Source of the DNA: Macrostomum lignano
Taxonomy: Eukaryota
Direction: 5' to 3'
DNA: 64,000 nucleotides
NCBI GenBank assembly: GCA_002269645.1
Contig: NIVC01000996.1
Location: 62,001 to 126,000 of the forward strand
Positions within the stretch are counted from its first letter, which is position 1; each line of letters begins with the position of its first letter. Below the pieces are notes generated by a model, which had not been told where the DNA came from, made no database searches, and saw only the letters and a program-made list of their open reading frames with translations. The translations under genes and the position numbers were made by a program. This document shows positions 38,536-64,000 of this stretch, piece by piece.

Positions 38536-39204
38536 GAGAGCATCGAATTGAAAAGAACACATGAGATGGAGACAGCTATAGAAGAAGTCGGAAAGGCAGA
38601 GATGGTGAGTATAGCAAATCGCAGAATTTGATGAGGCCACGTGAGTAAAAAAAACACAGAGTGGATGAAGGCTCTCCCTCAAAGTTGAATCCAAGGATTC
38701 TAAAAAAGTTGATCCCGGACAATGCAATCGCATACCTGAGGCTTAGGAAATGCATTAGCTAGGTGCAACCTGAGAAGAACCCCAATCCAAACCTTCATCA
38801 TTGTGTCGCACTCCCAGCATCCACCCCATGCTTGAATGCAGAGCACGGCTCAGCCCACCACAAACTTCCTTCAAAAGATTGTTCAGGAAGTTTGCCCCCC
38901 GGTTCTTCAGTTAAAACCTGCGCTATGCCGTGTGTCCCTGAGCAGCTGGGGCCAGATGAGAATTTGTGCTCAGAGCACTGAACTTCAAAGGGGAGCTCAG
39001 GCTGCTTTTACCCGGAAGAGAGCATTGCATTCATTTTTGCATTTGCGCGTACAGGGCATGTCAGTTGAAATTTTCCTATTTAATTCTGCACTACCAACAA
39101 GGAGAGAGGATACGTCGATAAGCTGATTTCAGGCATTATTAGAATTCTAACTGAGCTGCGCTGGGTTGAATGCACTGTGGCGAAATAGTGGATAATGACT
39201 CACC

Positions 39205-42800: not shown

Positions 42801-43527
42801 CCTAACAACCCTAAGCCTCTGAAGTTTTACCAAATTTCAAAATTCGTTGAACCACTCGATTGCGAATGATTTCGAAGTATTTTTAGTTTGTCGCCAACGC
42901 CCGTCAAAAAGCCTCCTATCTCTTGGTGGACCCTTAATTCTGTCTCGTGGTGGGCGCTCCTGTCTCTTGGTGGGCGCTCCTGTCTCTTGGTGGGCGCTCC
43001 TGTCTCTTGGTGGGCGCTCCTGTCTCTTGGTGGGCGCTCCTGTCTCTTGGTGGGCGCTCCTGTCTTTTGGTGGGCGCTCCTGTCTTTTGGTGGGAGCCCT
43101 GTCTCTTGGTGGGCGCCCCTAGCTGTCTCATACCTATGCAATACCTGCCAAAGAGGTGCCAAAAGTATACAGTTCCTCTTATTCGTCGAGCCTCGATGGT
43201 TACGTCCTTCATTTACTTACTGGGGGAGTGCAATTTTTCTGGGGCCATTGTGCGGTTGTCGGATACGGCCCCTTTCATGGCTCCCCTTTGTGCATACACA
43301 TGTCACTAGACCCAAACCTTTGCACACGCAAACACCCGCAGGGCCAGACGGCACTGTTCTATTGCGCAATGCACCGCCACTTGCGCATGGCGGAACTGCT
43401 TCTCAGCGCCGGTGCCGACCCAACGAGACCCAACATCAAAGGCGTCACGCCGACGGCCGTGGCTGACGCGCAGGAGAGCGCCGCGATGCGATCTCTGCTG
43501 GCAAAAAGGGCCGCTGCTTCAAGCTGA
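39836..43527 (+). CDS. FANK1: Fibronectin type III and ankyrin repeat protein, 4 exons (39836-39970, 40562-40955, 42312-42697, 43342-43527), ~366 aa
   Basis: FN3 domain PPKPP...VTHQSLELSW...YKGYDTKCTVTGL...YSLRFR is followed by LHR.V and ankyrin repeats (GFSPLMQAA, GKTALMLVC, GSTALHYAVDG, GQTALFYC). All junctions are GT-AG and phase-compatible (0,1,0). The architecture matches FANK1. Confidence 0.88.
40280..40525. repeat. 17-bp GA minisatellite (GAGAGAGGAGATGAAGG)n in FANK1 intron 1
   Basis: Directly visible. Confidence 0.9.
40993..42122. repeat. 27-bp minisatellite (TTGATTCAGCATGACGCTCTCTGACAC/G)n, ~42 copies, in FANK1 intron 2
   Basis: Exact 27-bp periodicity with no unique spacers. Confidence 0.97.
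42918..43116. repeat. 20-bp minisatellite (GTGGGCGCTCCTGTCTCTTG)n in FANK1 intron 3
   Basis: Same family as 8062-8462, but fixed for a C>T variant. Confidence 0.93.
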
Positions 43528-43599
43528 TGTCAAGCACTTCTGACGGTGAGATTTTTTGAACTCATCTATACGTATCACTGCGTGCGCATGTACGTGTAC

Positions 43600-44868: not shown

Positions 44869-45257
44869 GACCACTGGATAGGTGAAAAGTAAAAAATAGA
44901 AAACTCGAAAACTTTTTACTCTTTAATAGAGTTAAAATTGAGAGATTTTATAGTGGGCGAGTAACTTACACTCGAAGAATTCTGATTTATTATATTTTAT
45001 ATTTCAATTTGTGGCCTTTAAATAAAACACAGAGCTTAATTGTATCGGTCCAAAAATACCGCGGGTAAAAAGTTTTCAACCTGAATAAATGTTGCACAGC
45101 ATACGAGTGCACAGAAAGCAAAAAAACAATGTTTTAGGATATATTTGACGCTTAATAAATCAAAAATTACTTTTAAGACACTTTTCTGCCACAAAGTGAT
45201 TTTCTCTCTTTCTAATCATATCAATGTAATTTTTTGTTTAAATGAAACCAAAAAAGC

Positions 45258-45409
45258 CCAACGCGCGCACAGACTTAGCCAAACAATGTCAAGCAAAGTT
45301 TTAGCCAATAATATCAGACAGGTGGCGCCCATCCGGTGTACTGGTGCGGACGGTTCCAATTAGGATTTTAACGCCGAGGCCTGTCGTCATACGTCTGGGC
45401 TCGCGCTGG
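45258..45409 (-). promoter_or_regulatory. SECIS-like element in the 3' UTR of selenoprotein copy 1
   Basis: Minus strand: AUGAC (45390-45386), GACAGG..GGCG, AAA, then CGCC.CCUGUC and UGAU (45316-45313), giving a G.A/A.G quartet. The outer helix CCAGCGCG pairs with CGCGUUGG. The core is near-identical in copy 2. Confidence 0.7.
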
Positions 45410-45574
45410 TTTTTTTATTTGTTTTTGACGAAATTCAATTCATGCTACTATTTAGTCTACTTACAGTAGAGATATACGTTTTTGACCGTCTATAAATTTG
45501 TTTATTCATTGTAAAAAAAGAGAAAACGCTCTTCGGAGAGATTGTAAATGAAAAGTTAATAGCGAAGCACAGCA

Positions 45575-45842
45575 TTACAGCAGATTACATCCGGGACTTT
45601 GAGAATCTTCCAGTACGTTAGGATCGTCGCCATTTGTAGCTCGCTTCACCTGTTCGACAACCTGATTTTCATCAGGAAAGCCGTGCAGCTTCAGCTTGGA
45701 GAAAATCAGCTGGCCATTGATTGTCACCTCGAAGCTGCCCCGGCGACCATCGTGACCGGAGATCTGAACCCCGCTGGGGCACGCGCTGAGAATAGCTCTG
45801 CGCAGGTGCTCATAGCGGGGTTCGTAGCCTCATCCGCTGCCA
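45575..45842 (-). CDS. MIEN1: SelW2/MIEN1-like (Rdx family) selenoprotein, main exon, in-frame UGA=Sec at 45832-45830; exon 1 not located
   Basis: After the acceptor CAATGCAG the exon reads GSG-U-GYEPRYEHLRRAILSACPSGVQISGHDGRRGSFEVTINGQLIFSKLKLHGFPDENQVVEQVKRATNGDDPNVLEDSQSPGCNLL*. This matches SelW2 UGYEPRY, G+FE++ING.L+FSKL..GFP and the CaaX end. Confidence 0.85.
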
Positions 45843-48800
45843 CTGCATTGGGTGAAATTGGGATAACCAGTAAGGATATATGCTCAATAAAAATCGCAAC
45901 TGGGTAAACGGCAGGAGTAACTATGACTGTGCTTCTCCAGTAAAATGCCTCGGCATCTAACTAAGCAAAGACTGGCTTCAACCCTTCAAATATGATTTGA
46001 AGCTATTAATATTACTTATTGCTTTTGATTGCAGATTGTCACAATCACATATTTGTTTTTTCTTAATTTGCTTTCTTTCCTTTTCTTCCCTTGCTTTTTC
46101 TTGGGTTGGCCATTTTTGCAACTTACCTTTCTTGGCATCTCATTACTTGGCTATATTAGCTAGATTGGCCAGGTGTTGCAAATGTATAATTCTAAAACAA
46201 TTTCAATACTTCATAAACTATATTCAAACATTCTAAAAGGTAATCAATATTATAAATTTTTTATACATTTTATAAATAATATAATATGTTTAGGATATAA
46301 AATTATTAATTGTAAAACTTATCTAATAGAATTAATTCATTATATGCTAGTGTGGTAGGGCTTTGAACATTACTACAAATTCAATTACTAATACATGATA
46401 TTTTAATTAATAACTTCAAGAATGTTACCAGTTCTGCATGAAATGATCAATACAAATATACAACAAAAATTAATTATTTGTTTAGACATTTATTTTTTGC
46501 ACCACAATTTTTGATATCAAGTACTATGTATACAAATCAAATTCTTATCCTTGCCAATCAAAATCATATCCTTATTGCCCCAGATCATGTTAAGGCTTTT
46601 GTGGCCCTGCTTTTGTATTGGCTCCCACTCAGCCTGATCTCTTATGTCAATAGGCTAGACTATTACCTAGCTTAGCTCATAATACAAAGCTTATATAATT
46701 TACAGTGGCTGGATTGACCAGGTTAGCCAGCAGTTGCGCATATATGGCTTATAAGCTATTAGCTAGAGTCAATAAGCAAATTTTCTCTGGTATACATTAG
46801 GCCTATACTAATATATGATCTTGACACTAGTATTTACATAAGTCTTAGCCCAAACTCTGGATCATATAGTATACACCCAAAAATTAAGGTGTGCATTGGC
46901 CTTGTATGCAGTGTTAGGCACCAGTCCATTAATAAGCATCTATCCATAAATAAGCACTAAGATTTTTCATTAACATTAATAGACTGCCATTAAGATTTTT
47001 TTGCACTAATGGATTAACAAATTTGCATTAATAATATCCCTTATTCATCCTTAACATTAATGGCAATGTCAATGACCAAGGATGCAAAAAAGAACAAAAA
47101 TATAAATCTGGCAAGAAGTTACATTGCAGTATGTATTTCAATTTACCTAAATACATATTTAACATTTTTGTTTTTAACAATGATGATGCAAATATAATAA
47201 CTTCTTACTAATGAACTTTAATAATGAATTAAAATTATGTTATTGCTTGTGCATGAGCATCAATTACTTTGATTCACTTCTTTCCCAATTTTTTCTTAAC
47301 TTTCTGCTGCACTTACTAATGCTATTGAAACAACCTTTATATTTGTATTTTATTATTAATCAATTAGCTTTCAAGTTTCAAATAAATGAGTTACGTCTTA
47401 CCTTTTTACCATATGCTTATTTTTAGTAGTATTATATAAATATGGACATGCGTGGTACATTGCGGTTAGGGCTACTGGTTTTCTATTGCTAAGGTTTTAG
47501 ATTTTGGTAGATTTGCTGCCACCAGGCTTCCTGCTTCCCTATTTCTATTAATTTAGTGATAAGGAGTGACACAGGAAAACCAAAATATTTAACAAAACTT
47601 TTTTATTTCAAAAAAAGAAAAGAAAATCAGCATGCAATGGTTATTGTTACTTTACTTGTGGGAAAAGCTAGGCATTGACTACCTTGTAGTGTACTATTGT
47701 TGGCATCGACTACCTCTAACAGTTTTACGTATTTCCTAATATTTTTCCTGCCTCTTACCTTTCCTAATTTGAGACTTCGTGAGTCCGCAAACGAACGAAT
47801 CTGCTTCCCAAGCAGTAACAGTAACAGTAATAAGTATTTGGCACCTCAGCCATTGATTAGGCTTTTACACCACTAGATATAAATTAATTCCAGGTTGGGA
47901 GTGTACTTATGTACACTGAGATCCTAATTGGAGCTAAGAGGACTGTACAAAGGGCAATTGACAAATCAAAAACCTCCCTGGGGGACAGTGACAGCGGAAG
48001 GACGTACCGGTCAGGAATCCCATGGGTTAGAAAAGCCAAAAACCGGTCATATGACCGCCCCCACGGCCGTGGCAGCCCGAATGAGCCTCCCCCCAACTAA
48101 ACCCCGGGTACTCTTGCCAGACAGTCTCTTATCTTTGAAGCGGCAGGAGGGCTAATCGCCGGGACTATTTCACCCTTTGCTTCGCCAACCCACCATTTCT
48201 ATAGTGACCATGCCAACAGTCTCGTCCTGCTCAGACTCAGTCCTGGTTCTGGCACACTCCAGCTATAATAGGGTCGCTGGCTGTTTGCTCAGAGGGCACT
48301 TGAAGGAGACCGTCAAAGCACCAACTGGAACAGGTATAGGCCTGCCTTCCTATACAGCTACCCACAGCCCTTCCCAATCCACTATTACCCTCCAACCCAG
48401 CCTACTCACTCATTACAAGCTTTCAGCCAGGAAGAGACAAGTTTCACAGGGGTACTGCGGTTAGGCGCCTCTATGCGAGACAAAACCACAGCCTCACGGT
48501 GATTTGAGACTAATCTTCCCAAGCCCCAAACTGCTCTATACTTCTAAGGAATCCCGAAAACTAGCGCTTTTCCCCCGCTCTAATTACTTTCCTAAACCTA
48601 AACTACTGACAGTAGGCAAAAAGCATATCTGCTTTGCTACTAATTCCCATTCCTAAAATACTGCCCTACTACACATACAAGTTTTTTAAATTATTATTTT
48701 TTACTTTCTTAGCTTATAAATCCCTTAAATGATCTCAGTGTTTTGCTAAAAGGTAGAAAAGCAGACAGTATATTATGAAGTCTGTTTTGCAAGATTTCTG

Positions 48801-50959
48801 TATTTTCTGTGGTAACTTTAACAGATTAACACTTAATAACAATTATCAGTTAAATTTTAGTTAATTTAACAAAATTAAAAGTGAATAGGTTAAGATTTCT
48901 TTGTTTTAACACTAATGCTTTTGCCATTAACAAAGTTAAGATTTTCATTAATAGTGCCCAACACTGCTTGCATGCCAAAAGTAGGCATGTACAGTTGGTG
49001 TACATCACTATTAAGAAAATAGTATGCATGCATACCTGGTATATATTTTATAGAATCATAGAAAAGTTATTATAAAGTAGAATATAAAAAAGGTCACTTA
49101 ATGTCGCAAAATCAGCTTAGTTTTGAGAATAGGTGTGCACTCTATTTTTTGGCATGCATTTATATATTTAATTTTTGTTAGGGCATGAATGATCAAGACT
49201 ATGGTTCTTAGCAAGTAAATAAACTTTGTTTATCTATAAAATTAATGTACTACACTCAATTTTCTGGCATACATTTGTAATTATTCAAGTTTTATTTGGG
49301 TATGCACCTAGCATGATCTAGACGGTATCTACTCTTTTTGATGCCTGTGCTTTTTGTTGCCCTACATTTTGGTACCCCGGTTTGCTTTTTGGTGCCTAAA
49401 TTATAAATTAGAGTTAACACAAAAATATAAAAAATGAGCCCTATTTAGCAGTAAGTGCTTTGCTTTGTAGTACTTATTTACTTAATAACTAAGGTATTCA
49501 TTTTGTTAAGCTGACCTGTTATTTAAATGAAGAAATGGTCTTGTTTTATTTTTAATTTTTTCTCTCAATTTGATTTTTAAGAAATAAAACAGGATCATGT
49601 GACTCAAGAAATCAATACTAGAATAGATTTGTGCCATTCCATAATTTTGATCAAAACTACATTTAGCATTATTGATAAATTTCATCTTTATTTAAATAAC
49701 TCTTTTAAGCATGCATGCTAAGTGCAGCCTTGTAATTATAATAAAGGATTCAGAAAATGCATGCAATTAAATTAATTCAACTTTTCAAAATTAAAAAAAC
49801 ATGCCAATTTAACAAAATGGATAGGCTTACTAGATTACTGCTTTTATTAGAAATACTAAATGTTTTGTAAAGTATTTATTATATTTGCTATTAGATTACT
49901 TTTTATTATTATTTAGGCATCATAAACTAGGGCACTGAAAAGAAATCTGGAGTACCAAAATGCTAGGCACCAAAATGCATTGAAACTATTCCGATTAGGT
50001 AGGCCTATGGTTCTTAGCAAGTAAACATACATGCGCAACTTTGGGAATCACTTGGCTGTTTCTATTGGCAACACACATGTAAGTAACTATTGGCTAAGAT
50101 AGTCACGTGACTACTATAGAGATGTTCTAAAAGAGAATTTTCTGTCGAAATTGAAATTGAAATTGAAATTCACTACTTTCTGAAATTGAAATCAAAATTT
50201 TCCAAAATCAAAATTCAGAAAAACAAAGTTTAATACAACCGACACTCACTTTTCTACTTTCGATTTACTGCTCATGCAAAACAAAATATATGTATGTTTA
50301 GCAGAAGTTTGTTTATTTTCAGCCACTAAATAAGTAGAATCTTTCATTGCCACTTTAAAATGAAAAAAAATTTTTCGACGCGAAAACAGCATATACTGAG
50401 TTGTACATGTATAAAATATACAGTTAAAATGTACATGTATCACTGCATGACTAACAATAACTGAGACTGTTTAAACGATAATGCATGTATATATACGGTA
50501 AATGTACATATATATACTGTAAAATGTGAAAAATATGCAATATATCAGTAGACACTTTTGCAGCTTTAAAGTGCCACAAAATGGCGCATGACCAAGATGG
50601 CCACACACCAAGATGGACACAGCTCTGAATGGCTGCTTGGATAGGAATAGGTCTATTTTTCCTCATTTCCTATTGGCTGTGATTGGGGTGGGGTATGACG
50701 TAGCTTCAAGTCTCGGAGAAGACAGATTTCGTTAGTGAAATTAGACTAAGTAAAACAAAAAACACTTCCCTTTACAGTAGGTATTACTACCTACTAAAGC
50801 TAGTAGCACTACTAGCACAAGACATTTGATTTTTGTTTCATGGATAATAGTTTCAAACGTATCTCCATATACTAAAACTGACGTGTTGTTTGTATATGTT
50901 AAAAGTTAAAGGTAGAGGGTAAAGGTATTAGTTATGATAGAAGTAAGCAAAAATTGGAG

Positions 50960-51032
50960 TGCCTCTTGTCTCACATCTCTGCACTCTTGTCTCTTTTCTT
51001 TTCTCTGTCACTTCTGCCCTCTCGTCTCTAAT

Positions 51033-51071
<39 letters not shown>

Positions 51072-51545
51072 TCTGCCCTCTCCTCTCTCATCTCTTGCCC
51101 TCTCCTCTCTTATCTATTCTCTCTCATGTCTACCCTCTTCTCTCTTTTCTCTCTCATCTCTGCCCTCTCCTGTATCATCTTTCTCTCTCTCATCTCTGCC
51201 TTCTCCTCTCATCTCTTGCCCTCTCTCTCATCTATTCTCTCTCTCATGTCTGCCCTCTCCTCTCATCTTTTCTCTCTCTCATCTCTGCCCTCTCCTCTCT
51301 TATCTCTGCCCTCACCTCTCTCCTCTCCTTTCTCCTCATGTCTATTCTCTCCTCTCTTCTCACCTCTGCTATCATCTCCCTTTTCCTCTTCATTCTCTTC
51401 TCCCTTCCTTCCTTTCTCCTCTCCATTAATCTCCCTTCTCCTCTCTCTCTGCTTGTATATAATCTCTCCTCTCATCAACTCTCTTCTCCTTTATTCCTCT
51501 GCCTCTCCTTTATCCTATGCTTGTATTTCTCTTCTCTATTCCTTT
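50960..51545. repeat. CT-rich low-complexity tract
   Basis: Directly visible. A shorter one lies at 53560-53760. Confidence 0.9.
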
Positions 51546-51905
51546 TTTATTATTAGAGGCAGGGGGGTTGTGTGCACCCTGGCGCACTTTAAGCGACATA
51601 GGCACACAACCGGCGAGAGGCATTGCTGCCCATTCCGCTGACTCCCCTGAGCAGGCATACAAGCGCGCAGATATGTACGCAGGCACACACTCACACAAGA
51701 GTGTACAGCGGCCCTAACTTTATATTATTGTTAGGCATGTACACTTCACTGCGCCTTGGGGGGTTGGCTCTCAAGGCCATTAATTGCACGAGCAGAGCCA
51801 AGCCAAGATTCCAATTCAGCCCCAAATTAATGTGACTGCACTTGGAATCGAGCCTGGGTCGTTGGCACACCAGAGCAGCTGCGCTACCGCTGGGCTACGG
51901 CCCCC
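51545..51905 (-). mobile_element. tRNA-derived SINE family B, near full length
   Basis: Minus-strand head GGGGGCCGTAGCCCAGCGGTAGCGC...GGCTCGATTCC, tail GTCGCTTAAAGTGCGCC...CTAATAATAAAAAA, and a body shared with 1934-2125. Confidence 0.75.
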
Positions 51906-52146
51906 CTTTCTCTATTCCTTACCCTCTCTCCTCACCTCTGGCCCGCTCTGTCATCAGGACTCCTTGCTTCGCTTTGGGGGCCAACGAAGCGGACTAGAAG
52001 GGCAGTCATGAGCTGGGTTCTCAATCGAGGTAAAAAGTTTGCCAACCCCTGCACTAAAAGCACCTGGCTTAGTCACATTAGATAAAAACTACATGTATAG
52101 TGGAATGGGATTGAGAACAACGTGAACTAGCCTCTCTACTCTGAAC

Positions 52147-52718
52147 CAGTGGTGTGATTGGAAAGTTTGCCAAATTTCGCGCCGACTGAAAATTTTCGCG
52201 CCATGCCAATAATATTCTACTGACAGCCAAATAAGTCAATTGATGACACTTTTGAAGATGCGTCTGGCTACCAATTAGCATGTCTCTCAAGTCCCAGCTG
52301 TGTCCCGCCTGAACTTCTTGTTGGCGATGTTGGGTGGAATCTTTGAATCTGGGCAAATGGCCATCAGATCCTCGGCAAGGTCCTCTTCTGACTCGAAGCT
52401 GCGATTCTTAGTGCAATCCTGACAACACATCTGATCTCTGCCGCCCTTGCAGACGTAGCAGCCACATCATCAGTGTCACTTTGCTTCTTTGCGACCACGA
52501 AATTCTCCACGAATCTCGAAATTCTCGAGATTAATCTCCTAAGCTATGACATTCTTGTATTTCATACTGTCTGACAATAGAATAAGTATAAAAATCAGAA
52601 AATAGGAATGCAATTTTCGCGCCCATGGTTCCACAAAATTTCGCGCCAGACCCCCAGGATTCGCGCATTCGCGCCATTTTCGCGCCTGGCGCGAATTCGC
52701 GCCTAAATCACACCACTG
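52147..52718 (-). mobile_element. Internally deleted hAT element with a transposase fragment
   Basis: Perfect TIR CAGTGGTGTGATT/AATCACACCACTG, TSD CTCTGAAC on both sides and subterminal TTCGCGCC repeats. The minus strand encodes AEIR...NRSFESEEDLAEDLMAICPDSKI, resembling the hAT 'FPDSKIA' region. Confidence 0.85.
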
Positions 52719-52891
52719 CTCTGAACCTCTCTACTCTCAACCTCTCTATTCTCAGCCTCTCTACTGTCAGCCCCTCTCTACTCTCAGCCCCTCTCTGCTC
52801 TCAGCCCCTCTCTGCTCTTAGCCCCTCTCTGCTCTCAGCCTCTTTACTCTCAGCCTCTACTTTCATCTTCTCTCTCAGCTCAGCTTATATC

Positions 52892-53478
52892 CCCTATTGG
52901 AATAAATGTTAAAAACCCGCGGACGCGCGCTTTAGAAAAGAGTCAAACTATTTTACCGCGCTTTAGGATTATTAAAGATGTTCCGAAAGATCTGCAGTTT
53001 TGTCGAAATAAAAATTCGCTAACTTTCCAAAATCAAAATTGAAATTTCCCGAAATCATAATTCAGAAAAACAAAGTTTAGTATGATCAACACTCACTTTT
53101 TTACTTTCAATTTACTGCTTAAGTAAAAAGTAATACATGTATATTTAGTAGAAAGTAGTTTATTTTTAGTGACTTTTTAGACACTACCAAAATTTTCACT
53201 TCTAAATTTTTTTTCGAAATTGAAATTCACTCTAAAAAATTTCAAATTTTGGAAATTGAATTTTTGGAACATCTCTAAGCTTAATAAATTACGAGTATAT
53301 AAGCCCCTTCAACAGAGGTATTATACCCATTTCCATGTATATGTATTTGCTAGAGCAGCAGCCAGTAAGAAAGGGCAGCGCGCGCGCAGGCGCTGCGCCT
53401 GTGCGCGCGCTGCGCTTTAGAAAAATTTCAAAAGTGCGCCGGACACCGTCCGCGGTTTTACAACTTTTTCCTATAGGG
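52892..53478 (+). mobile_element. 587-bp TIR element (CCCTAT.GGAA ends), copy 1
   Basis: 8-bp TSD CTTATATC on both sides, imperfect ~33-bp TIRs, and near-identity to the inverted copy at 55195-55786. Confidence 0.85.
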
Positions 53479-53859
53479 CTTATATCTAGTTCTAAATTCT
53501 AAAGTCATACTCAAACAGAAACTTGTCTTTTGAAAACATGTATTGGCAAAATCTCTGGCCTGCTGTCTCTCTCTATGTCCCTCGGATCCTTTGAAACTCT
53601 ATCTTCTCTTTTGTTTCCTCTCTCTCTCTTCTCTCTCTTTCTTCTCTTTTCTTCTTTCCTATCTCCTCTCTCCCATCTTCTCTTGTCTCTCACCTTTCTT
53701 CTCTTTAATCTTTGCTCTCTCTTCTCATTTATCTCTGGTCTTCACTCTCTCCCCTTAGGAAAGAAAGAAAGATAGAAAAGATAGATAGCAAACATAGGAA
53801 AGAAGCCTATGTTTGAAAAAGTGCCCGACTTGTACCAGCTGAGGCCAGCTAGAAGGCAA

Positions 53860-54012
53860 CAAGGGAGAGATATTGTTGTAGAGTATCCAATCAAGAATGT
53901 GCCCACCCACTTTCTGGTGGATGGGGGCAGTGCGCTGTCTTTGCTAAGAGCCAAAGACTATTCTAAAAAAATCACTGGAAGGAGCATGGAGACCTTGGAG
54001 CCCCATGTGTGA
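53860..54012 (+). mobile_element. Retroviral-type (Ty3/gypsy-like) aspartic protease fragment
   Basis: IKNVPTHFLVDGGSALSLL resembles the LVD(T/S)G(A/S)..S active-site motif. It is isolated, with no RT downstream. Confidence 0.5.
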
Positions 54013-54212
54013 AGGCCGTGTCATGTCATTAAAGATTATAGGACTGAGAAAATTTATTTATTAGGAGTTGGTCCCCCGTTCGACCCCCGCTGAGTGGCAG
54101 AATGGTAGTCAGCCCGTGATAGCTTAATCCCCTCCCAATTAGCATATTGAAAGATTGCTATATGTTAAACTTGCTACAAATTGCTACAAACTATATGCTA
54201 CATACCATAGTC

Positions 54213-55139
54213 TAGAGATGTTCCGAAAGCGAATTTTCTGTCGAAATCGAAATCGAAATCGAAATTCGCTACTTTCCGAAATCGAAATCGAAATCGAAAT
54301 TTTCCGAAATTGTAATTCAGAAAAACAAAGTTTAGTACAACCAACACTCACTTTTCTACTTTCGATTTACTGCCCATGCAAAACAAAATACATGTATGTT
54401 TAGCAGAAGTTCGTTTATTTTTGGCCACTAAATAAGTAGAATCCCTCATTGACACTTTAAAATGCAAAATTTTTTTTCGACGCGAAAACTACATATGATC
54501 TGTAAATGTGTTAAGTAATTTATTTGAACTAGTGCCTTTAAAAGAAACACTAAGGTGCGTATATTGCATTACTAGACGGTATTAAAGCACGGCAGCAAAG
54601 CGCGCCTTTTCCCTGCTAGACAAAACAAATTTCTCTGCCTTTATCCGTCTAGGCGGTAGGGTATAGGGTGCATACTGAGTTGTACATGTATAAAATGTAC
54701 AGTTAAAATGTACATGTATCACTGCATGACTAGCAATAACTGAGATCGTGTAAACGTTAATGCATGTACATGTACGGTAAATGTACATATATATACTGTA
54801 AAATGCGAAAAATATGCAATATATCAGCAGACGCTTTTGCAGCTTTAAAGTGCAACAAAAATTACGAAAATTTACAGTTCCACATGTACAAACTACCATG
54901 TTACATGTCCTACATGCATGGAACAGTTTTAACAAATTCAAATAGTTTTACATGTAAAAATTGTATAATATAACATGTAATTACAATTAGTTCTAAAAAA
55001 ACTAAAATCAGATAAAAATTTCGGAAGTAGGCACTTCCGAAATTTTGACTTCCGAAATTTTTTCAAAATTGAAATTTGCTCTAAAAAAATCCAAATTTCG
55101 GAAAATCGAAATCGAAATCGAAATTTCGGAACATCGCTA
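54213..55139. mobile_element. Intact 927-bp copy of the TAGAGATG hAT-like family
   Basis: TIR TAGAGATGTTCCGAAA / TTTCGGAACATCGCTA, TSD CCATAGTC on both sides, and subterminal GAAATC repeats. Confidence 0.88.
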
Positions 55140-55194
55140 CCATAGTCAGGAGGGTGGCACAGTGTGTGCCAGAACTATTTTGATGCCTTTTGAG

Positions 55195-55786
55195 CCCTAT
55201 AGGAAAAAGTTGTAAAACCGCAGACGGTGTCCGGCGCACTTTTGAAATTTTTCTAAAGCGCAGCGCGCGCACAGGTGCAGCGCCTGCGCGCGCTGCCCTT
55301 TCTTACTGGCTGCTGCTCTAGCAAATACATATACATGGAAATGGGTATAATACCTCTGTTGAAAGGACTTATACACTCGTAATTTATTAAGCTTAGAGAT
55401 TTTCCAAAAATTCAATTTCAATTTTCCAAAATTTGAAATTTTTTAGAGCGAATTTCAATTTCGAAATAAAATTTAGTAGTGAAAATTTTGGTAGTGTCTA
55501 AAAAGTTGCTAAAAATAAACTACTTTCTACTACATATACATGTATTACTTTTTGCTTAAGCAGTAAATTGAAAGTAAAAAAGTGAGTGTTGATCATACTA
55601 AACTTTGTTTTTCTGAATTATGATTTCGGGAAATTTCAATTTTGATTTTGGAAAGTTAGCGAATTTTGATTTCGACGAAACTGCAGATCCTTCGGAACAT
55701 CTCTAATAATCCTAAAGCGCGGTAAAATAGTTTGACTCTTTTCTAAAGCGCGCGTCCGCGGGTTTTTAACATTTATTCCAATAGGG
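55195..55786 (-). mobile_element. 592-bp CCCTAT TIR element, copy 2 (inverted)
   Basis: 8-bp TSD CTTTTGAG on both sides. Reverse complement of 52892-53478. Confidence 0.85.
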
Positions 55787-57529
55787 CTTTTGAGCACTGT
55801 GCGCCGTGCGCCATGAATAAAAGATTTTGTGCGCCGCAGCGCGCCATGATAAGGTAAGTCTAAGGTAAGGTAAGGTAAGGTATTTATTTCTACCATAAGG
55901 AATTTACAGTAGACAAATTTGAATTTCATTTACGTATTTTATATTGTGACTTACATAATTTACGTAATTTACGTAATTTTATTTTACGAATTATGGAATT
56001 AGGCCTGACACTATATATTTTGCAAAATATAACGAAGTGTAACTATATATTTTTTTCAGCGCCATGCTCCATGTGCGCCGCCAGAGCATTTCCAATTTTT
56101 CCTTGTATGACATGTGCGCTGTGTGTGCCAAAAAAGGCCAATTTGCGCCGGAAAATTCACCAAAAACTGCCACCTTCCCAGCTATGGGTTACATGTCCTA
56201 CATGCATGGAACAGTTTTAACAAATTCAAATTGTTTTACATGTAAAAATTGTAATAATATCACTGATAAAAGACAGTAACGAAGTTCTAAAAAAACTAAA
56301 ATCAGATAAAAATTTCGGAAGTAGGCACTTCCGAAATTTTGACTTTCAAATTTTTTTTGAAATCGAAATTTGCTCTAAACAAATCTGAATTTTGGAAAAT
56401 CGAAATTGAAATTTTGGAACATCTCTAGACTACTATTCCATCCAATAGCAACTTACATATGTGTGTTGTGTTGCCAATAGAAATGGCCAAGTGAATACCA
56501 AGGTTGTGCCCAAGGGCCAAGCATGCAAGTAAATAACTTTATACAAATATATTAATACAACTTACTTATTACAAAAGTAATGCAATAGAAATATTGTATA
56601 AAATATTATTGTTTTGAGCAGCAACACTAATAATTACTCTGTTTATATAAAAATAGACTATTTCTCTAAATATACACTTAATAATAGCCACAAACTTTAT
56701 TATAGCCATAGGCCTAATAAAAACACTATACATGTGCAAATATTAAAATAGTATTAGACTGATACTGGTCTGGAACTTTGGGTATAGCTGTAACTCTTTT
56801 ATACTAGGCCTAGGGCTAGGCCCTATCCTAACAAAAACTGTTTGTACCAATTTGACAGCAAATGAGAATGGAATTAGTTTGCTAATTAGGCCTAAATTCA
56901 TTTATTATATAAAAACTAGGCCTAACAGATTCTTGTAGCTAAATATTTTAGTCTAGGCCTAGTGGATTTCTATCGATTCAAAACCGATTCAATAGATTTG
57001 ACATTTGGATACAATGGCATCAAAGTTAGGCCTAATACTACCAAACTTAAAGAAGGTAGCCCCCTTCCCCCTATTATGTTTCAATCTTTTTTAGTGCATC
57101 AAGTTCAACTGTTCAAGACTCGTATTAATAAAATGATACTTACCAGTATTCAACACTAACGGTAACGGGGTGCGACATCGTAATGTAACTTCTGTCTCTA
57201 AGAATGTTAAGGTTTATTTAGTATTTTATTGTAAAGCGTTTCCTTATTTTTTTAGGACTGAAAATTGATTTTATATAAAAACTGTATCAGCGCGATAAAA
57301 ACAAACATGAAAGTTAACAAATTTTTCCGCAAAATGTAAAAACCAATATCATTTTTAATACAGAACAAAAAAACTCAGAAAATTTTATTACCACATTATG
57401 TAAAATTTAGTTTGCATGATATAGGTGAAGGAAAAACGCATACATGTTATGCATGTAATAGATACATACGGAAAAGTTGTATTCATTTATATATTTTTAA
57501 GGCAATTAAATATTTATTCTCATAAGTTT

Positions 57530-57814
57530 TAGTCTAGTGGTTGAGCGTTGAACTCACGACTTCAAGGTTGGGGGTTCGATTCCCGATCCCACAGGAACAA
57601 TTTTGTGTGCAGCACGATCGAGAAGATCGACACTTAATTTTTACATGTAAACTCTGCATTTATTTGCTTCAGTTCACCCAGCTGTAAAATTGGTGCCAGC
57701 ATTAGCTGGGGTAATTCAGGGTGTGTGGCGACCCCAGTCCTTAATTGGACTGAACGCAGTCTTCAGATGCGCCGCAAAATAGCTGCGGCGGAGCTGTCGG
57801 TTGCACATCTGGCC
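57530..57814 (+). mobile_element. SINE family A, near full length, with small insertions
   Basis: Head TCTAGTGGTTGAG...GGGGTTCGATTCCCGATCCC, CORE-like CAGTTCACCCAGCTGTAAAAT, and tail GTTGCACATCTGGCC. Confidence 0.85.
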
Positions 57815-58447
57815 ATAAGCTAGGCCGGTGTAAATCAGCTCAATTCAATCTCGATGAAGCATAATGCAGCAGACTGCAGACAGCTTTAACATTTGATAAG
57901 ATTTTTTGACATTTGAATACAATGTATTAAAGTTCAGTCTGTATAATTTTGCATGACAAGAGTATATAATCATATTTTACATGTAGCCATCAAATTTGTA
58001 CGGTTATCTTTTAATGGAAAATTCCTAGAGTTAATAAAAACGCTGGTGTAGGACATGCAAATTAAATGTTTCTGTCAGATTTACACATGTAAGCTGAAAA
58101 AATAGTATTTCCTTCTGTATTTTTGCGTGTGGTCGCCATGCAATATTACTGCCAACCAGCTGCCCGTCAAGATATCACCACAAAGATCTTTACATCAGAG
58201 CAACACTGCTCGCACTAATCTTAAAATCTACGATGTACGAGTACCCTACCCAGAGCAGTTGTCTCTCCAGAGGCACTGCTCCGAACTTCTCCGATGCACC
58301 GCGCAGCTGCCGCCGTATCTCCTGCCGTCTCTGTCTAGACTCCGCTTTCGTCCCTGCTGGCACCGCCTCCACAGGGCCCTCTTCAGCACAGCTGCTACAA
58401 GCTAGCCCAGGAAGACAGTGATAACATCGAACTCCGCTGCCTGCAAT

Positions 58448-58720
58448 GATACCATCAAAGGCCATGATACCATCGTTTAATGTAGCTCTCTGACATACCA
58501 TCGAAGGCCATGATACCATCGTTTATGTAGCTCTCTGCCATACCATCGAAGGCAATGACACCATAGTTTAATGTAGCTCTCTGCCATACCATCGAAGGCA
58601 ATGACACCATAGTTTAATGTAGCTCTCTGCCAACCATCGAAGGCAATGACACCATAGTTTAATGTAGCTCTCTGCCATACCATCGAAGGCAATGACACCA
58701 TAGTTTAATGTAGCTCTCTG
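58448..58720. repeat. 46-bp minisatellite (CCATCGAAGGCAATGACACCATAGTTTAATGTAGCTCTCTGCCATA)n, ~6 copies
   Basis: 46-bp periodicity, e.g. 58543 vs 58589. Confidence 0.92.
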
Positions 58721-58899
58721 GGAACACAAAGAGCGCGCGGCCTTGACGGAAATCAGCAACCGCCCTTTGACCTCAGTGACCCGTCACCAGCTTCTTCAGC
58801 CGGAGCAATGGCTCCGATCCTGCTGCTCAGACCGATCTCTGCCGCCTCTCCTGTTAACCCGGAGTTGACGTCAACGCCTTACCTCGCCTCCATGACCCG

Positions 58900-59500
58900 C
58901 GATGATGCAGCAGAACCAGCACCTGATGCAACAGCTCGCTAGCTGCCACCGTCCGTCCAGCCTCGACACCAGCTGCCTCAACGCCCGCATCAGATGCTCA
59001 CGATCCGACCGGGCTCATCCGCTCCACCATTCTCAAGAACGTGCTTCTCCCGACCTTCGACGGTACGGACCCTGCTGCATTTCCGGGCTTCTGGGATGCC
59101 TTCGTTTACCGCGTCGACCGCTCCAGCCTCAAAGACGTCGACAAATTTGAGGCACTCCGCGGTTTGCTCTCCGGCTCCGCTCTCAAGAATCTCGGTGCCC
59201 TCGACGCCTGCCAACCGGGCGCCTACGTGGAGGACTGCTGCGTGTCCTCCAGGCCAACTACGCCGACACGCAGGAGAAAAAGAACGCCTCCTTCCAGCGT
59301 CTCCTCGCCTTTCACTTCAGCTCTGCCTCCGACTTGGGTGAGCTCGAGGAATTCACAGCTAGACGACCTCCACCTGGCCACCGGCCAGCTCCTCCGCCTC
59401 GGCGAGCTTGCCTGCACCCTCGACAGCTACGTCTACGCGCTCTGGAGCCGCCTGCCGCTTGAATTCCAGAGCGAGATCCGCAATATTCCTGCTTCTAACA
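58900..59500 (+). mobile_element. BEL/Pao LTR retrotransposon gag fragment (DUF1759-like), degenerate
   Basis: LPTFDGTDPAAFPGFWDAFVYRVDRSSLKDVDKFEALRGLLSGSA matches the Pao gag pattern LP.FDG....W..FWD.F......LS...KF..L...L.G.A. There are frameshifts upstream and it is truncated near 59500. Confidence 0.8.
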
Positions 59501-59921
59501 GGCAGCCTCTCATGCCCAACAGGCGCAAAGTGGTTAAAGTTATCTTTTAACTTTCTTCTAATTAACAAATTTTTAAGCTAACTTGCCCTAACTATAGTAT
59601 ATTTTTTCTAATTTAAGCATAATGTACATATCTTTAATGGTCTACAAGTCAAGCGAACTATTTAGTATTTTATTCTTTTTTTAAGTAGCCCTTCATAAAA
59701 AAGCCGCTAGAAAAGTATTCAACCTTGATATTAAAAGTAGCGCAGCATGCGACTGCACGAAGCAAAAAAATGAACTATGTTTCAAGATACATGTATATTT
59801 GATGCCGAATAAATCAAAAGTTACTTTTAAGACACTTTTCTGCCACAACTTATTTTCTTTCTTTCTCCTTTTATAAACGTAACTTTTTCACAGTTTTTTT
59901 GTTTAAATGAAACCAAAAAAA

Positions 59922-60051
59922 CCAACGCGCGCACAGACTCAGCCAGATACGTGTGTCAGACAGGTGGCGCCCATCCGGTGCGATGCTGCGGACGGTTCCA
60001 ATTAGGATTTTAACGCCGAGGCCTGTCGTCATACGTCTGGGCACGCGCTGG
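59922..60051 (-). promoter_or_regulatory. SECIS-like element in the 3' UTR of selenoprotein copy 2
   Basis: AUGAC (60032-60028) pairs opposite UGAC (59958-59955). Helix II is GACAGG/CCUGUC plus GGCG/CGCC, followed by AAA. Helix I is CCAGA.CGU/ACG.AUCUGG, and the outer 11-bp helix is CCAGCGCGUGC/GCGCGCGUUGG. Confidence 0.72.
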
Positions 60052-60215
60052 TTTTTCTATTTGTTTTTGTTTCTGAATTCAATTTATGCTACTATTTAGT
60101 CTACTTAAAGTAGAAATATACATTTCAAATATCAAAATCTGTTTATTCATTGAAAAAAAGACTTCGTTTATGAGAGAGAAATCAAGAAAATTAAGTAAAA
60201 ACGAAGCCAATAGCG

Positions 60216-60486
60216 CTACAATAGATGACATCCACAACCTCCGCTATCTGATCCCAGCTTCTTAGGCTTCACACCATTCGTGGCTTTCCTCACATCGTCG
60301 ATCACCTGTTTCTCAACGGGGAAACAGCGCATCTTCAGCTTAGAGAAAATCAATTGGCCATTGACTGTCACCTCGTAAGCGCCCCGACGACCAGCAACAC
60401 CGGATACCTGAACCCCGCTGGGGCACGCGCTGAGAATTGCTTCGCGCAGGTGTTCATAGCGGGGTTCGTAGTCTCATTGGACGCTG
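60216..60486 (-). CDS. MIEN1: Second SelW2/MIEN1-like selenoprotein, main exon, in-frame UGA=Sec at 60476-60474; exon 1 not located
   Basis: After the acceptor CCTTACAG(CAG) the exon reads SVQ-U-DYEPRYEHLREAILSACPSGVQVSGVAGRRGAYEVTVNGQLIFSKLKMRCFPVEKQVIDDVRKATNGVKPKKLGSDSGGCGCHLL*. It is collinear with copy 1 and has the TGA at the same position. Confidence 0.82.
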
Positions 60487-60675
60487 CTGTAAGGTTGGGG
60501 GAGGGGAATTATAGATGATCAGTAGAGATTTTGCTGTATTACGCAGTACATGTGTGAAGTTGTTACGCAGCGATGTAAATGTACATCTACCTACCGACAG
60601 ACCACTTTTAGTATATGGAAACTTTGAATAAACTACATGTACATGTAGCTTCTGACCTCTCATACTTGATATATC

Positions 60676-60895
60676 TGAGCAATTCCCCCAGTAACCCTCG
60701 ACATCGCAGCAATTCCGCCCGTAAGCCATGACATCTCAGCAATTCCCCCAGTAACCCTTGGCATCTCAGCAATTCCCCCACTAACCCTTGGCATCTCAGC
60801 AATTCCCCCAGTAACCCTTGGCATCTCAGCAATTCCCCCACTAACCCTTGACATCTCAGCAATTCCCCCAGTAACCCTTGGCATCTCAGCAATTT
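60676..60895. repeat. 30-bp minisatellite (CTCAGCAATTCCCCCAGTAACCCTTGGCAT)n, ~7 copies
   Basis: Directly visible. Confidence 0.93.
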
Positions 60896-63800
60896 CATGT
60901 CCAACAATTTAACAAAGAAAGAGTGAATGTCTATGTCACGTGCTGGTCAAGCCTATTAACTAATTAGTACGAACATAAGTAGAGAATCTATAGTCAGGAC
61001 TGAGAGAGTTTATTAGCGTGGCCTTACAATACTTTTACAACGAAGAAATTATAAATGTAAAAAGCCAGCAGGTATGTATAAAAGGAATAAAAAATGAAAC
61101 TTTTTAAAAATCTTATACAACTGCATGAGAGCAAAATTGTACTATACATTTTGTAGAGTAACTTACATTACAATTTACTACTGACATGTATTCTGACCGA
61201 ATGTCACCCTCTGGGATCTAGGTGCGGAGCGCGGGGAGGACAGCCCAGCCAATCAGGGCTGGATACGCGATATACACTGCCGCTGCAGACGAAATGGGGG
61301 CCATTGCGAACGGTTAAAAGTGCAATGCTTAATTTGCTCCAAATGCCCCTGACCGAGGGCCAGAGCTGATTGCTCATCGCGGGCACAGCAGTGCTACTTA
61401 ATCCTACTGAGAAGTACCGGCCGTACCTCGATCTGTCTGCAAAACAGTACCGGTAATACCGTCTTGCAGAGGGAACATATCATCACATGTACTGTCTAAT
61501 TATAGTGATGAGGACGCACTTTTTTCCAAATCCCGCGCTAGCACATGGGCTCTAAACTTACTAGCCTACTAACAGTGGGCAATGGGCATTTTTATCCTTT
61601 TTCTGCGAATTGTCATAGAATCTATACTAGATATAATGTTTGGTCATACTAGTAGTCATAATAACGTAGGCGCAGCTTTTTGGGTCATAAATCATCGCTT
61701 TCAAAGCTGGTCTGACAGCCACCTGCGCCTCACTCAGTGTTGAGGCGCGCGCCAGATGGCCTGAGGGGATGCGAATGATAGCTTTTTTCGCATCATTTTT
61801 GACAGGCCATCAGATTTTTGAGGTCAGAGCCTATTGTTCGTGTTCACTCAAGCGTGTGACAGCTTTGACAGCTATGCGTTTTACCCCTAAAAGTACGTTG
61901 GGATTAGCGATTAGCGATTTCTCTTCATTATCTTCACTTTCTATTTAATAAGAGCTTTCTAATGTATATTTTTTCATTCATTTTTGTCAATTCTACGCGA
62001 AAAGTCATAAATCATTTTGTTGCGATTTTGAGTGATTTTTGGCCGCACCTGTCATGTTTTTACGACCCCGAGGGAACTGATAGGATCTCCCGGTCACGTG
62101 ATTTTGGGTGGCAGCTAGCTCATCCAATCAGAAAATTCGACGCTTATTTTAACAAATCGGCTCAGCCAATCAGAATCGACGTGTTCCATTATAACAAACT
62201 GCGGTCCAGTTGGCGGCTATTTAAACCGGTGTTTTTAGCCCGCTCGGACTGCAACCTTTTTGCGACCGGGTACTACCCTTGGCTCCACCGGCCAGGAACT
62301 GACCGTCGTTTCTTGATCCCCAGATTGCGACCTTCCCCCATTATCATCAAGGACCAATGGCAAGGCAGTTCTCAGTCGATCAATCTATCAAATCAGTGAG
62401 CAAAATTGCCAATAGTGCAGAATCGGCTCCAGAGATGTACTTTGTGCACTCTAGGTTAGCCAAGCGGCTCGGGTGATGAATCATGCGGTCTCTGATGTTC
62501 GAGTTAGCCTATCATCAGCGCTAGGAGAGGCTGGTTGGCGCGTTGAAGGCCAAAAGTACAATTCTTCGTTTTTAGCAATGTAATAGTACATGTAGCTACC
62601 CCATAGTCTCGCCACTGCAAAGAATCCCCTGCACAAGTCCCCTCTGTACCTGCATGGCCAATGCGATCTAGTCCCAGCAGTGTCCCTTATCATCGGCTAT
62701 GACTTCGAGATTGACAGCAAAAATACACTAGTTGGCAGGTATGTGCAAAGCCCCTTAGTCGGAAGCCCGATTTCGAGAGTCCCGGTGTGGTGAGCCAGGA
62801 CGTACGGGCTGGTGGCAGCGAGTTAGCTAATCTGCGGATTAGCTAATTTCTCACTACCTTCAAAATTCTCCCTGCTTGTCTCTCGCTGTCCCTCTCTTAG
62901 CTATAGGACCTAGACTGCTCGCCACACGATCAAGCTACCATGGGGCTGACCATCTGACAGGAGTGCCGCCAGGACTCTAATTGATTTATTTCTGACACCT
63001 GAGGCCCGAAGGCTTCCCCACAAGGGGGCCGGAAGGTCGAAACCCGACAATAGTACGAGCAATTTCAGATGCGCTGTCCAAAATAAGTGTCTAACTGTGT
63101 AACTGTATATGCGTGTATCCAGGGACTGCGATACTAATTAAATTCCGGCCTTTCAATACTGACAAAAAGTCCAGTCAACTTATTTAACTCAAATTTAGTA
63201 CGTATACTGAATCCCGAGTGAGATATATGTACACAAATTATACGTCATTCCGCTCACATGACACCTGAAAGCTGGGTTTGGCAAAAAGTGACGAAAGTAG
63301 GACTTGTTGGGAGGTGTGGGATAATTAATAAAGCTGGGCCGGGATAATGACCGGCCAATTTATGAGCTTAAAGTTGATACTAACTATCCCGTATCGCTTG
63401 TGAACATAGGTTACTGACTCCACTTTGAGTTGACAGGCTCTCTAAAAAACCCTTCAAATTGCAGCGCTGTCATGCGCCCTGTTTATACAGTTCAACAAAA
63501 AATCAGCAACAAATTAAATAAAGAATGTAACGATTCCGATTTTTTACTTTCTTGGCTGGGAACATTATGCATGCAGCATGTACAAAAAAGGAAATGAAAA
63601 TGACAGGAAACTCGATCCTCCTGCAAATTACAAAGAAGTCTTTTAACACTTTGTACGTGTACCTTACAAAAAAAATATTGCAATGAAAAAAGAATGCAAT
63701 TGTAATCTAACAGGCTGAAAAAGTGAAAAAAATCTCCGTTGAGTATTTTATAAAACTTAGCCCTCAAATTATTTTTTAGAACCAAATTTCTCGTCATACT

Positions 63801-64000
63801 ACTTGCCATTATTATGGTTATTGTCTAAATGAACTTCAATTAAAAAAATTTTTATAACTTATTTTCTTCAGCAGTTGGAGGTTTAAGTTATAAATCAATT
63901 TTGTTCATTATCATAAGTGTATTTTTGTTTCTTTACTCACTTTTGCATGCACTTGATCATTCCTACTACAACTAATTTTCAAAAATATCGCTGATTCGCT

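Follow-up and report, generated by a model that had tools for sequence, protein, structure and literature searches.

A head-to-tail pair of putative SelW2-type selenoprotein genes in the flatworm Macrostomum lignano

In vertebrates, the selenoprotein gene SelW2 is considered ancestral and occurs as tandem copies in zebrafish; SelW2 itself is absent from tetrapods except frog, and Rdx12 represents the cysteine (Cys)-type homologue there (PMC3316567). Among flatworms, three SelW2 genes have been described in Schmidtea mediterranea and one in Schistosoma japonicum (PMC3828610), and other animals are known to have SelW2 in several copies, SelW duplicates in tandem and copies of SelW without exon 1 (PMC3828610, PMC3316567). 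The related protein MIEN1 adopts a thioredoxin-like fold (PMC3527542), and its CaaX box is geranylgeranylated (PMC6738349). A literature search retrieved no paper describing selenoproteins of Macrostomum lignano. Here, we describe a 64,000-nt stretch of this flatworm's genome (the window; assembly GCA_002269645.1, contig NIVC01000996.1, positions 62,001 to 126,000), which contains two related coding exons, copy A and copy B. With a probability that we put at about 0.8, they would belong to a head-to-tail pair of SelW2-type selenoprotein genes, of which gene A is complete and in which UGA is read as selenocysteine (Sec, U) by means of a hairpin resembling a selenocysteine insertion sequence (SECIS).

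Both copies are located on the minus strand, and their TGA codons, which define copy A (TGA 45832) and copy B (TGA 60476), are 14,644 bp apart. The reading frame of copy A runs from the in-frame TGA (45832-45830) through 84 sense codons to a stop at 45577-45575, giving 85 residues including Sec, U-GYEPRYEHLRRAILSACPSGVQISGHDGRRGSFEVTINGQLIFSKLKLHGFPDENQVVEQVKRATNGDDPNVLEDSQSPGCNLL (U-GYEPRY...CNLL). In copy B, the TGA at 60476-60474 precedes 85 codons and a stop at 60218-60216, and the resulting 86 residues read U-DYEPRY...GGCGCHLL. The two peptides are collinear with 67% identity, and a tblastn search of the window returned these two as its only Rdx-type copies. The coding part of gene A exon 2 (45575..45842, minus) begins T GGC AGC GGA TGA GGC TAC and ends with CNLL and the stop (CaaX box, 45589-45578), while the terminal coding exon of copy B (60216..60486, minus) begins C AGC GTC CAA TGA GAC TAC and ends with CHLL and the stop (CaaX box, 60230-60219). 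Each exon follows an AG preceded by a pyrimidine-rich tract, ...cccaatgcag/T at 45843/45842 in copy A and ...ccttacag/C at 60487/60486 in copy B. This arrangement agrees fully with a sequence-only reading made earlier of the same DNA, which had described two collinear minus-strand exons 14.6 kb apart, encoding 85 and 86 aa with an in-frame TGA, behind splice acceptors and ending in CaaX-like boxes. An unspliced reading upstream of the TGA was rejected, a stop being present and an ATG absent in either copy. The mechanical list of open reading frames (ORFs) contains only GTG-started fragments of 50 and 51 aa at the two copies, and therefore misses both genes, as that reading had also claimed.

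The homology extends beyond the coding exons. A duplicated block (45068-45833 against 59711-60477) shows 76.7% identity over 804 columns, and therefore about 505 nt of the 3' untranslated region (UTR) are common to A and B; a shared 3' UTR with a SECIS-like fold had been proposed before, with an estimate of about 430 bp. Identity amounts to 76.0% in the coding part and 75-79% in most of the 3' UTR, and rises to 93.7% (74/79) in a 79-nt SECIS-like core. The likely poly(A) signal of gene A is an AATAAA at 44986..44991 (minus), just beyond the end of the A/B homology, which gives a 3' UTR of about 600 nt; that of copy B is an AATAAA at 59669..59674 (minus). Sequence taken from contig NIVC01000996.1 is 100% identical to window positions 35575-55826. 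The same A/B arrangement is present on two sister contigs of the assembly, L001 and L003, with 92-98% identity, which is consistent with the description of M. lignano as a hidden polyploid (PMC10468722). The TGA is preserved in A and B on all three contigs, that is, in six gene copies.

Two further features of the 3' UTRs were observed. An early AATAAA on the minus strand (45501-45506 and 60142-60147) is located about 70 nt past the stop within CAATGAATAAACA, is conserved in all copies and precedes the SECIS-like element; were polyadenylation directed from here, the transcripts would lack the SECIS and terminate at the UGA. In addition, two non-SECIS blocks, TCTACTGTAAGTAGACTAAATAGTAGCATGAATTGAATT and TTGTGGCAGAAAAGTGTCTTAAAAGTAAYTTTTGATTTATT, are 96-98% identical between A and B, against only 76% in the coding part. 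They lie on the minus strand at about 45425-45475 and about 45150-45195, with twins at about 60065-60115 and about 59800-59845, and the first contains a small palindrome.

Family membership was examined by profile and sequence searches. Both products match Pfam Rdx (PF10262), copy A with 57.6 bits (E = 1.5e-15) and copy B with 53.0 bits (E = 4e-14) against a curated cut-off of 22.6 bits, and this match is far above chance; the SelW2/MIEN1-like Rdx identity suggested by the sequence-only reading is thereby upheld. The best solved relative in PDB is human MIEN1/C17orf37 (2LJK, 3e-15), with SelW (2NPB) at 1e-5, and the fold is taken as fixed by this match to MIEN1. A library search yielded 252 representatives matching at E <= 0.001, headed by CxxW-GYEPRY proteins and MIEN1 orthologues. 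Among the 151 family representatives examined, 96 end in a CaaX box (including CNLL), and the redox motif was readable in 31, comprising 23 CxxW and 8 CxxC with no other spacing. The W of CxxW is the TGA as printed by gene callers, which was verified in L002, a SelW2 transcript of another organism. Sec is printed as W in this way in many SelW2 relatives (L002:103-390 has TGA). The TGA of A and B aligns with this W/C column, the Sec/Cys position of the homologues. Copy A holds the signature U/C-G-[YF]-E-P-R-Y, in which copy B has D replacing G after Sec, and both carry a CaaX-like C-terminal box (CNLL in A, CHLL in B) for which prenylation is predicted. From these sequence features, A and B are assigned to the SelW2/MIEN1-type Rdx genes and are read as a tandem duplication.

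In relatives that are readable through the UGA, the N-terminus of the family follows the pattern M-x(2-6)-V-x-V-E-Y-C-x-x-U. Both strands of the window were scanned for the corresponding first exon, ATG-ORF-[hydrophobic]x[hydrophobic]x[aromatic]-TG/GTR. A single match was obtained, at 57178-57144 on the minus strand, the plus strand yielding none; shuffled sequences would be expected to contain 0.017 matches per strand to a strict version of the pattern. The matching sequence, ATG TCG CAC CCC GTT ACC GTT AGT GTT GAA TAC TG/gtaagt, encodes MSHPVTVSVEY(C), of which 8/12 residues are identical to the family N-terminus MSQPVKVHIEYC of the relative P0006. It is 100% identical in sister contigs L001 and L003, sits between the 3' end of copy B and exon 2 of A in the correct orientation, and ends in a perfect donor, TG/GTAAGT. 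The putative exon 1 of gene A spans 57144..57197 (minus), with a putative 5' UTR at 57197-57179 and a coding sequence at 57178-57144 that contains the first two bases of the Cys codon at its end. Directly upstream, 19 nt before the ATG, lies ttcttag/AGACAG..., which could be a cis-splice acceptor or, since 30% of M. lignano genes are trans-spliced (PMC8629364), a spliced-leader (SL) trans-splice acceptor.

The predicted intron 1 of gene A (45843..57143, minus) measures 11,301 bp and interrupts the Cys codon in phase 2; in the two sister contigs, the intron measures 5,624 and 6,522 bp. Its position and phase are the same in the relative L005, from an unrelated genome (gtgcag/T GGT GCC TGA), and correspond to a common first splice site in SelW genes (PMC3828610). 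On this evidence, gene A is read as a complete two-exon gene with predicted splicing from 57144 to 45842. The protein collection contained no transcript-derived ORF of gene A. Low-complexity Ser/Leu-rich ORFs (50934-51641) form part of the extra intron DNA of the window (about 48.5-56.5 kb). A tRNA-like stretch was observed on the plus strand (about 57530-57610), some 350 nt upstream of exon 1, with the T-arm box GGTTCGATTCC and the D-arm box TAGTCTAGTGG. ARAGORN detected no tRNA in the whole window, so this stretch is not a tRNA-Sec gene; Rfam likewise made no call on it, and it is probably a tRNA-derived repeat or pseudogene.

A SECIS-like hairpin is present about 185 nt past the stop in each 3' UTR; in gene A, the UGA-SECIS distance is 442 nt. 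The element of gene A spans 45258..45409 (minus), with AUGA at 45390-45387 and UGAU at 45316-45313, and an outer helix in which 45409-45393 pairs with 45274-45258. That of copy B spans 59922..60051 (minus), with AUGA at 60032-60029 and a 3' UGAC at 59958-59955. The element reads GACGU-AUGA-C-GACAGG-CCUC-GGCGU-UAAAA-UCCUAAUUGGA-A-CCGUCCG-(11-nt loop)-CGGAUGG-GCGCC-A-CCUGUC-UGA(U/C) and is enclosed by the long outer helix CCAGCGCG.GCCCAGAC / GUCUGUGCGCGCGUUGG. Its layout comprises an AUGA/GA quartet above helix I, a helix II of 6 + 5 bp, an unpaired AAAA and a 7-bp apical helix, from which we assign it to a type-II-like form.

Several lines of evidence suggest that these hairpins may act as SECIS elements. 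Compared with shuffled sequences, both elements fold with unusual stability, reaching -60.3 kcal/mol (z = -4.6) in A and -56.9 kcal/mol (z = -3.0) in B. All 4 internal differences between the A and B cores fall within the 11-nt apical loop, for which the probability by chance is about (11/75)^4, or about 5e-4, and the single change that L001 shows in this element replaces a G-C pair by G-U. The core of gene A fits the SECIS consensus UGAN/KGAW (PMC3753652). A compact, classical-looking SECIS candidate, AUGAC-11 nt-AA...UUGAA, is located 100 nt past the stop of the SelW2 gene of the relative L005 (ATGA at 4836 in L005:3001-4900), and the A/B core resembles this candidate (AUGAC...UUGAA). Our own AUGA/AA/GA scan, which is too crude for ranking and served for orientation, gave about 8 matches per 128 kb. 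No match of similar span was more stable than copy A; the copy B of the window failed the helix-I rule of the scan and its twin on L001 passed it. As candidate SECIS elements, the 3' UTR hairpins are well supported by these sequence and folding data.

The spacing between Cys and Sec depends on the acceptor that is used. In L005, the distance from acceptor to TGA is 7 nt, giving C-G-A-U, and the homologous first AG in A and B is 10 nt away. In gene A, this first AG would give Y-C-G-S-G-U-G-Y, and the only other AG (tggcag/C, 45838-45837, exon from 45836) would give C-G-U. A canonical CxxU, as implied by the sequence-only reading, is therefore not what gene A yields under GT-AG splicing (CGSGU or CGU). 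In 3' splice-site selection, an AG located 6 nt upstream normally excludes a downstream AG, and the first AG of gene A should for this reason be preferred. Copy B has a CAGCAG tandem acceptor, of which the first AG would give x-S-V-Q-U and the second (exon from 60483) x-V-Q-U; the second would produce CxxU if the exon 1 of copy B ends in TG. The motif sequence is identical on three contigs, and therefore no local assembly error is involved. Cys-Sec spacing varies between paralogous thioredoxin-like selenoprotein families, Sep15/SELENOF having CxU and SELENOM having CxxU. This difference indicates that an altered Cys-Sec spacing can be functional and provides a precedent for a possible CGU isoform.

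A potential RNA structure was identified within the coding sequence. Beginning 6 nt after the UGA, GAACCCCGCU (E-P-R) pairs perfectly with AGCGGGGUUC (S-G-V) 38 nt downstream, with an inner stem between the arms. In gene A (45766..45823, minus), this structure consists of a perfect 10-bp stem and the inner stem, and the 80-nt fold has a minimum free energy (MFE) of -37.5 kcal/mol (z = -3.6), which 0/200 shuffles equalled. In copy B (60410..60467, minus), the 10-bp stem is retained with a weaker inner part (MFE -29.2 kcal/mol, z = -1.9), and in B', the version of copy B on sister contig L001, two synonymous changes open the stem in the middle (z = -1.4). Synonymous sites have diverged less between A and B over codons 1-22 (0.13) than over codons 23-72 (0.47; p = 0.028), and a gene-conversion tract would also account for the low value. 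A similar fold with the same E-P-R codons was observed in the SelW2 transcript L002. Sec redefinition elements (SREs) adjoin the UGA of some selenoprotein mRNAs, for example SELENON (PMC5727441, PMC3541580), and the post-UGA stem-loop appears to resemble such an element. Tentatively, and at somewhat less than even odds in our judgement, gene A would be expressed as a SelW2 with a C-G-S-G-U (or C-G-U) centre whose recoding is aided by this stem-loop, apparently common to the SelW2 of another animal. If true, this would represent a natural variant of the CxxU thioredoxin-fold motif, together with a candidate SRE in the SelW2 family.

Selection was examined through the ratio of non-synonymous to synonymous substitution rates (dN/dS), a calculation that the sequence-only reading had suggested. 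Between A and B, dN/dS is 0.44 overall, synonymous change exceeding non-synonymous change (p = 0.006), which is below 1 but only moderately so; by region, the values are 0.35 (fold core) and 0.75 (C-terminal tail). Across the three contigs, gene A varies hardly at all, by a single D/N change. Copy B and B' are separated by 4 synonymous changes and 4 non-synonymous ones, all conservative (dN/dS 0.30).

Taken together, these features suggest the following model. Exon 1 of gene A would be spliced over the 11.3-kb phase-2 intron to exon 2 (from 45842), producing a protein about 100 residues long. The UGA codon (45832) would be recoded as selenocysteine by the type-II-like SECIS hairpin in the 3' UTR, probably with the assistance of the stem-loop that starts 6 nt after it. 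The product would be a small Rdx thioredoxin-fold thiol/selenol oxidoreductase with its Cys/Sec pair after strand 1, and the CNLL tail may be geranylgeranylated as in human MIEN1, which would place the selenol redox centre at a membrane.

The analysis shows the sequence features, the homology, the conservation, the folding and the intron position. In this model, splicing, Sec insertion, prenylation and activity are predictions from DNA, and a number of observations, presented here and in the next paragraph, weigh against it. Under GT-AG splicing, gene A has neither the CxxU nor the CxxC spacing of the Rdx family, and another Cys-Sec spacing is found in 0/31 readable relatives. The hairpin is atypical, with a 4-nt/1-nt asymmetric internal loop in helix II, an AAAA positioned 16 nt after AUGAN and an unusually long internal loop (17-18 nt) before the apical helix. 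In copy B, the 3' core of the SECIS-like element, UGAC, departs from KGAW. Rfam covariance models returned no SECIS, either in the whole window at the gathering threshold or in both UTRs at E <= 10. This negative result is of little weight, because the same search did not report the classical-looking L005 candidate at E <= 10 and returned no SECIS in L002, where our own scan also gave none that was convincing; the L005 case is a caution that the Rfam library may miss SECIS elements in screening. A more sceptical explanation, which we consider very improbable, would take both TGAs as ordinary stops or pseudogene lesions in relics of a Cys-type MIEN1-like gene, with a UTR hairpin unrelated to Sec. 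The Rfam result, the atypical hairpin geometry and the non-canonical spacing in A could be cited in its favour. It is countered by the position of the TGA at the exact Sec/Cys column, where it is kept in six copies on three contigs, and by the TGA carried by most relatives themselves. Coding conservation of gene A on both sides of the TGA (exon 1 and exon 2) and a dN/dS significantly below 1 also argue against relics, as does an AUGA/AA/GA hairpin at the usual place that is the best-conserved part of the duplicated block, with its changes confined to the loop.

The status of copy B is more difficult to judge. Copy B (60486-59650) is a diverged paralogue and would represent either a second gene with an exon 1 located past 64000, or a partial duplicate in the course of losing its function. 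The latter explanation, in which only the terminal exon and 3' UTR were duplicated, copy B is drifting to a pseudogene and gene A is the sole functional SelW2 at the locus, is in our view a serious possibility that is nevertheless doubtful. The 3.5 kb upstream (60487-64000) contain no exon 1 for copy B, as judged by ATG-ORF-TG/GT, any TGGT[AG] and V-x-V-x-Y-C in three frames, and a peptide-like match at 61456 was rejected because it ends in phase 0 and does not fit. Upstream of the acceptor, the DNA homology of A and B dies out within about 60 nt, and SelW copies without exon 1 have arisen after duplication in other animals (PMC3828610). A start codon supplied by the spliced leader was also rejected, because splicing to either acceptor of B would leave its ATG in a different frame from the Sec codon, and the acceptors of A likewise put it out of frame (SL sequence, PMC8629364). 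In addition, copy B has Asp instead of the near-invariant Gly after Sec, and amino-acid changes mapped with 16 relatives as outgroups number 19 on the B lineage and 9 on A. Further points on the same side are the UGAC of its SECIS-like element, at a quartet whose U.U position is known to matter (PMC3541580), and the post-UGA stem-loop that is weaker in B and opened in B'. Copy B and B' differ at 8/261 coding positions against about 5/600 UTR positions, the UTRs being 99-100% identical. On L003 (NIVC01001400.1; L003:47-130), copy B is identical to that of the window except for one C missing from a C4 run, GTGCCCCAG, which causes a frameshift; either the allele is truly null or the PacBio assembly contains a homopolymer error here. 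On the other side, the 85-codon frame is intact on 2/3 contigs, and copy B still carries its TGA, its acceptor, its CaaX box, the SECIS stems and a poly(A) signal. The Pfam score of B (53.0 bits) is near that of A (57.6), and its dN/dS against B' is 0.30. An exon 1 of B beyond the available 3.5 kb is quite plausible, because the intron of A measures 5.6-11.3 kb. On balance, we lean towards a functional copy B. The claim of the sequence-only reading that both duplicates kept Sec therefore stands as far as the tandem pair and the preserved TGA are concerned, whereas the function of B is unproven, given the missing exon 1 and the signs of relaxed constraint. Alternatively, a single transcription unit starting upstream of B could use A and B as its alternative terminal exons, with the exon at 57178 acting as an alternative first exon inside it. 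In favour of this are the common orientation and acceptor phase of the two exons, the lack of an exon 1 for B within the window, the frequent use of operons and trans-splicing by M. lignano (PMC8629364), and a public gene model (P0004) that joins A and B. That joined model is, however, clearly chimeric, with nonsense sequence between its halves; B has its own stop, SECIS-like element and AATAAA, and A has its own start-codon exon with an acceptor-like site upstream, which makes a single unit improbable.

Other features of the window were also recorded. Directly upstream of the acceptor of copy B, a 30-nt unit (GGGGGAATTGCTGAGATGYCAAGGGTTAVT) is repeated in tandem about eight times at 60700-60900 on the minus strand, and the homology of L001 to this array ends differently. 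A multi-exon ankyrin-repeat gene is located at 40500-43530 on the plus strand, with Pfam Ank in the ORFs 40562-40996 and 42281-42805; tandem repeats of 27 nt, whose copy number varies among contigs, form a 1.2-kb array (40961-42217) that interrupts this gene. The window further contains two weak rhodopsin/serpentine-type G protein-coupled receptor (GPCR)-like ORFs (11563-12771 and 17062-18704, minus), an intronless protein kinase ORF (28629-30032, minus; Pkinase, 3.5e-34) and a DUF3504/phage-integrase-like ORF (7-921, plus), the last being typical of Crypton-type elements. Long tandem-repeat arrays are present at 9055-10705 and 36291-38733.

Public records cover the two genes in part. The NCBI entry PAA64976.1, annotated as "hypothetical protein", is a partial protein of 83 aa that is 99% identical to the copy A product and begins just after U-G. 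UniProt A0A1I8HGK5, in the same 90%-identity cluster, has 397 aa and is auto-named "Selenoprotein W"; it consists of the copy B peptide after Sec, nonsense sequence and the C-terminus of copy A. The expectation of the sequence-only reading that standard annotation would truncate the genes is borne out by the partial first record and the chimeric second one. The genes had also been described as hidden, which holds for their truncation and fusion in annotation and less so for their name, as one record already carries that of Selenoprotein W.

This analysis corrects the annotation of two SelW2-type loci in a model flatworm and adds a macrostomid data point to the larger selenoproteomes of free-living flatworms. 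It also provides a clear example of UGA-Sec genes that escape annotation based on ORFs and gene models. The Cys-Sec spacing and the post-UGA stem-loop raise two small, cheaply testable questions, on redox-motif tolerance and on recoding signals. Because the family is well known, the finding is useful and will not greatly surprise a specialist, and it involves no new class of system.

With the SelW2 genes of fishes and invertebrates, A and B share the predicted Rdx fold, the CaaX box, a SECIS-like element in the 3' UTR and the multi-copy or tandem arrangement, and gene A also shares the putative UGA-Sec followed by G-Y-E-P-R-Y, the N-terminal V-x-V-E-Y-C strand and the intron splitting the Cys codon. 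They differ from them in the spacing of gene A, which is CxxxU (or CxU) instead of CxxU, in one extra residue in the loop after helix 1 of both copies (CPSGVQ), and in a SECIS-like element whose internal loop is unusually long and whose helix II is asymmetric. The host is a macrostomid, a species outside the papers found on SelW2 (PMC3828610, PMC3316567). MIEN1/C17orf37/Rdx12 (2LJK) aligns over residues 5-87 against 34-114 and has the same length, a CaaX end with Leu, a thioredoxin-like fold and a redox motif. In contrast to A and B, it is a tetrapod derivative of SelW2 with CxxC, a longer N-terminal extension and neither UGA nor SECIS. SELENOW (2NPB) belongs to the Rdx family and has CxxU followed by G-Y-x-P-K-Y and the same logic of UGA plus SECIS, but it is more distant (1e-5), has a different C-terminus and lacks a CaaX box. 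The predicted post-UGA structure is comparable to the SRE of SELENON and others as a stable stem-loop just 3' of the Sec UGA in the coding sequence; unlike these, it has no sequence relationship to them, is weaker in B and is opened in mid-stem in one sister contig. SELENOF and SELENOM, which offer the precedent for altered spacing, differ from gene A in being ER-resident members of a different family without a CaaX box. In summary, A and B are new members of the established SelW2 subfamily, from whose family definition the Cys-Sec spacing is the one departure; beyond it, only the SECIS geometry and the candidate stem-loop set them apart from the SelW2 genes already described.

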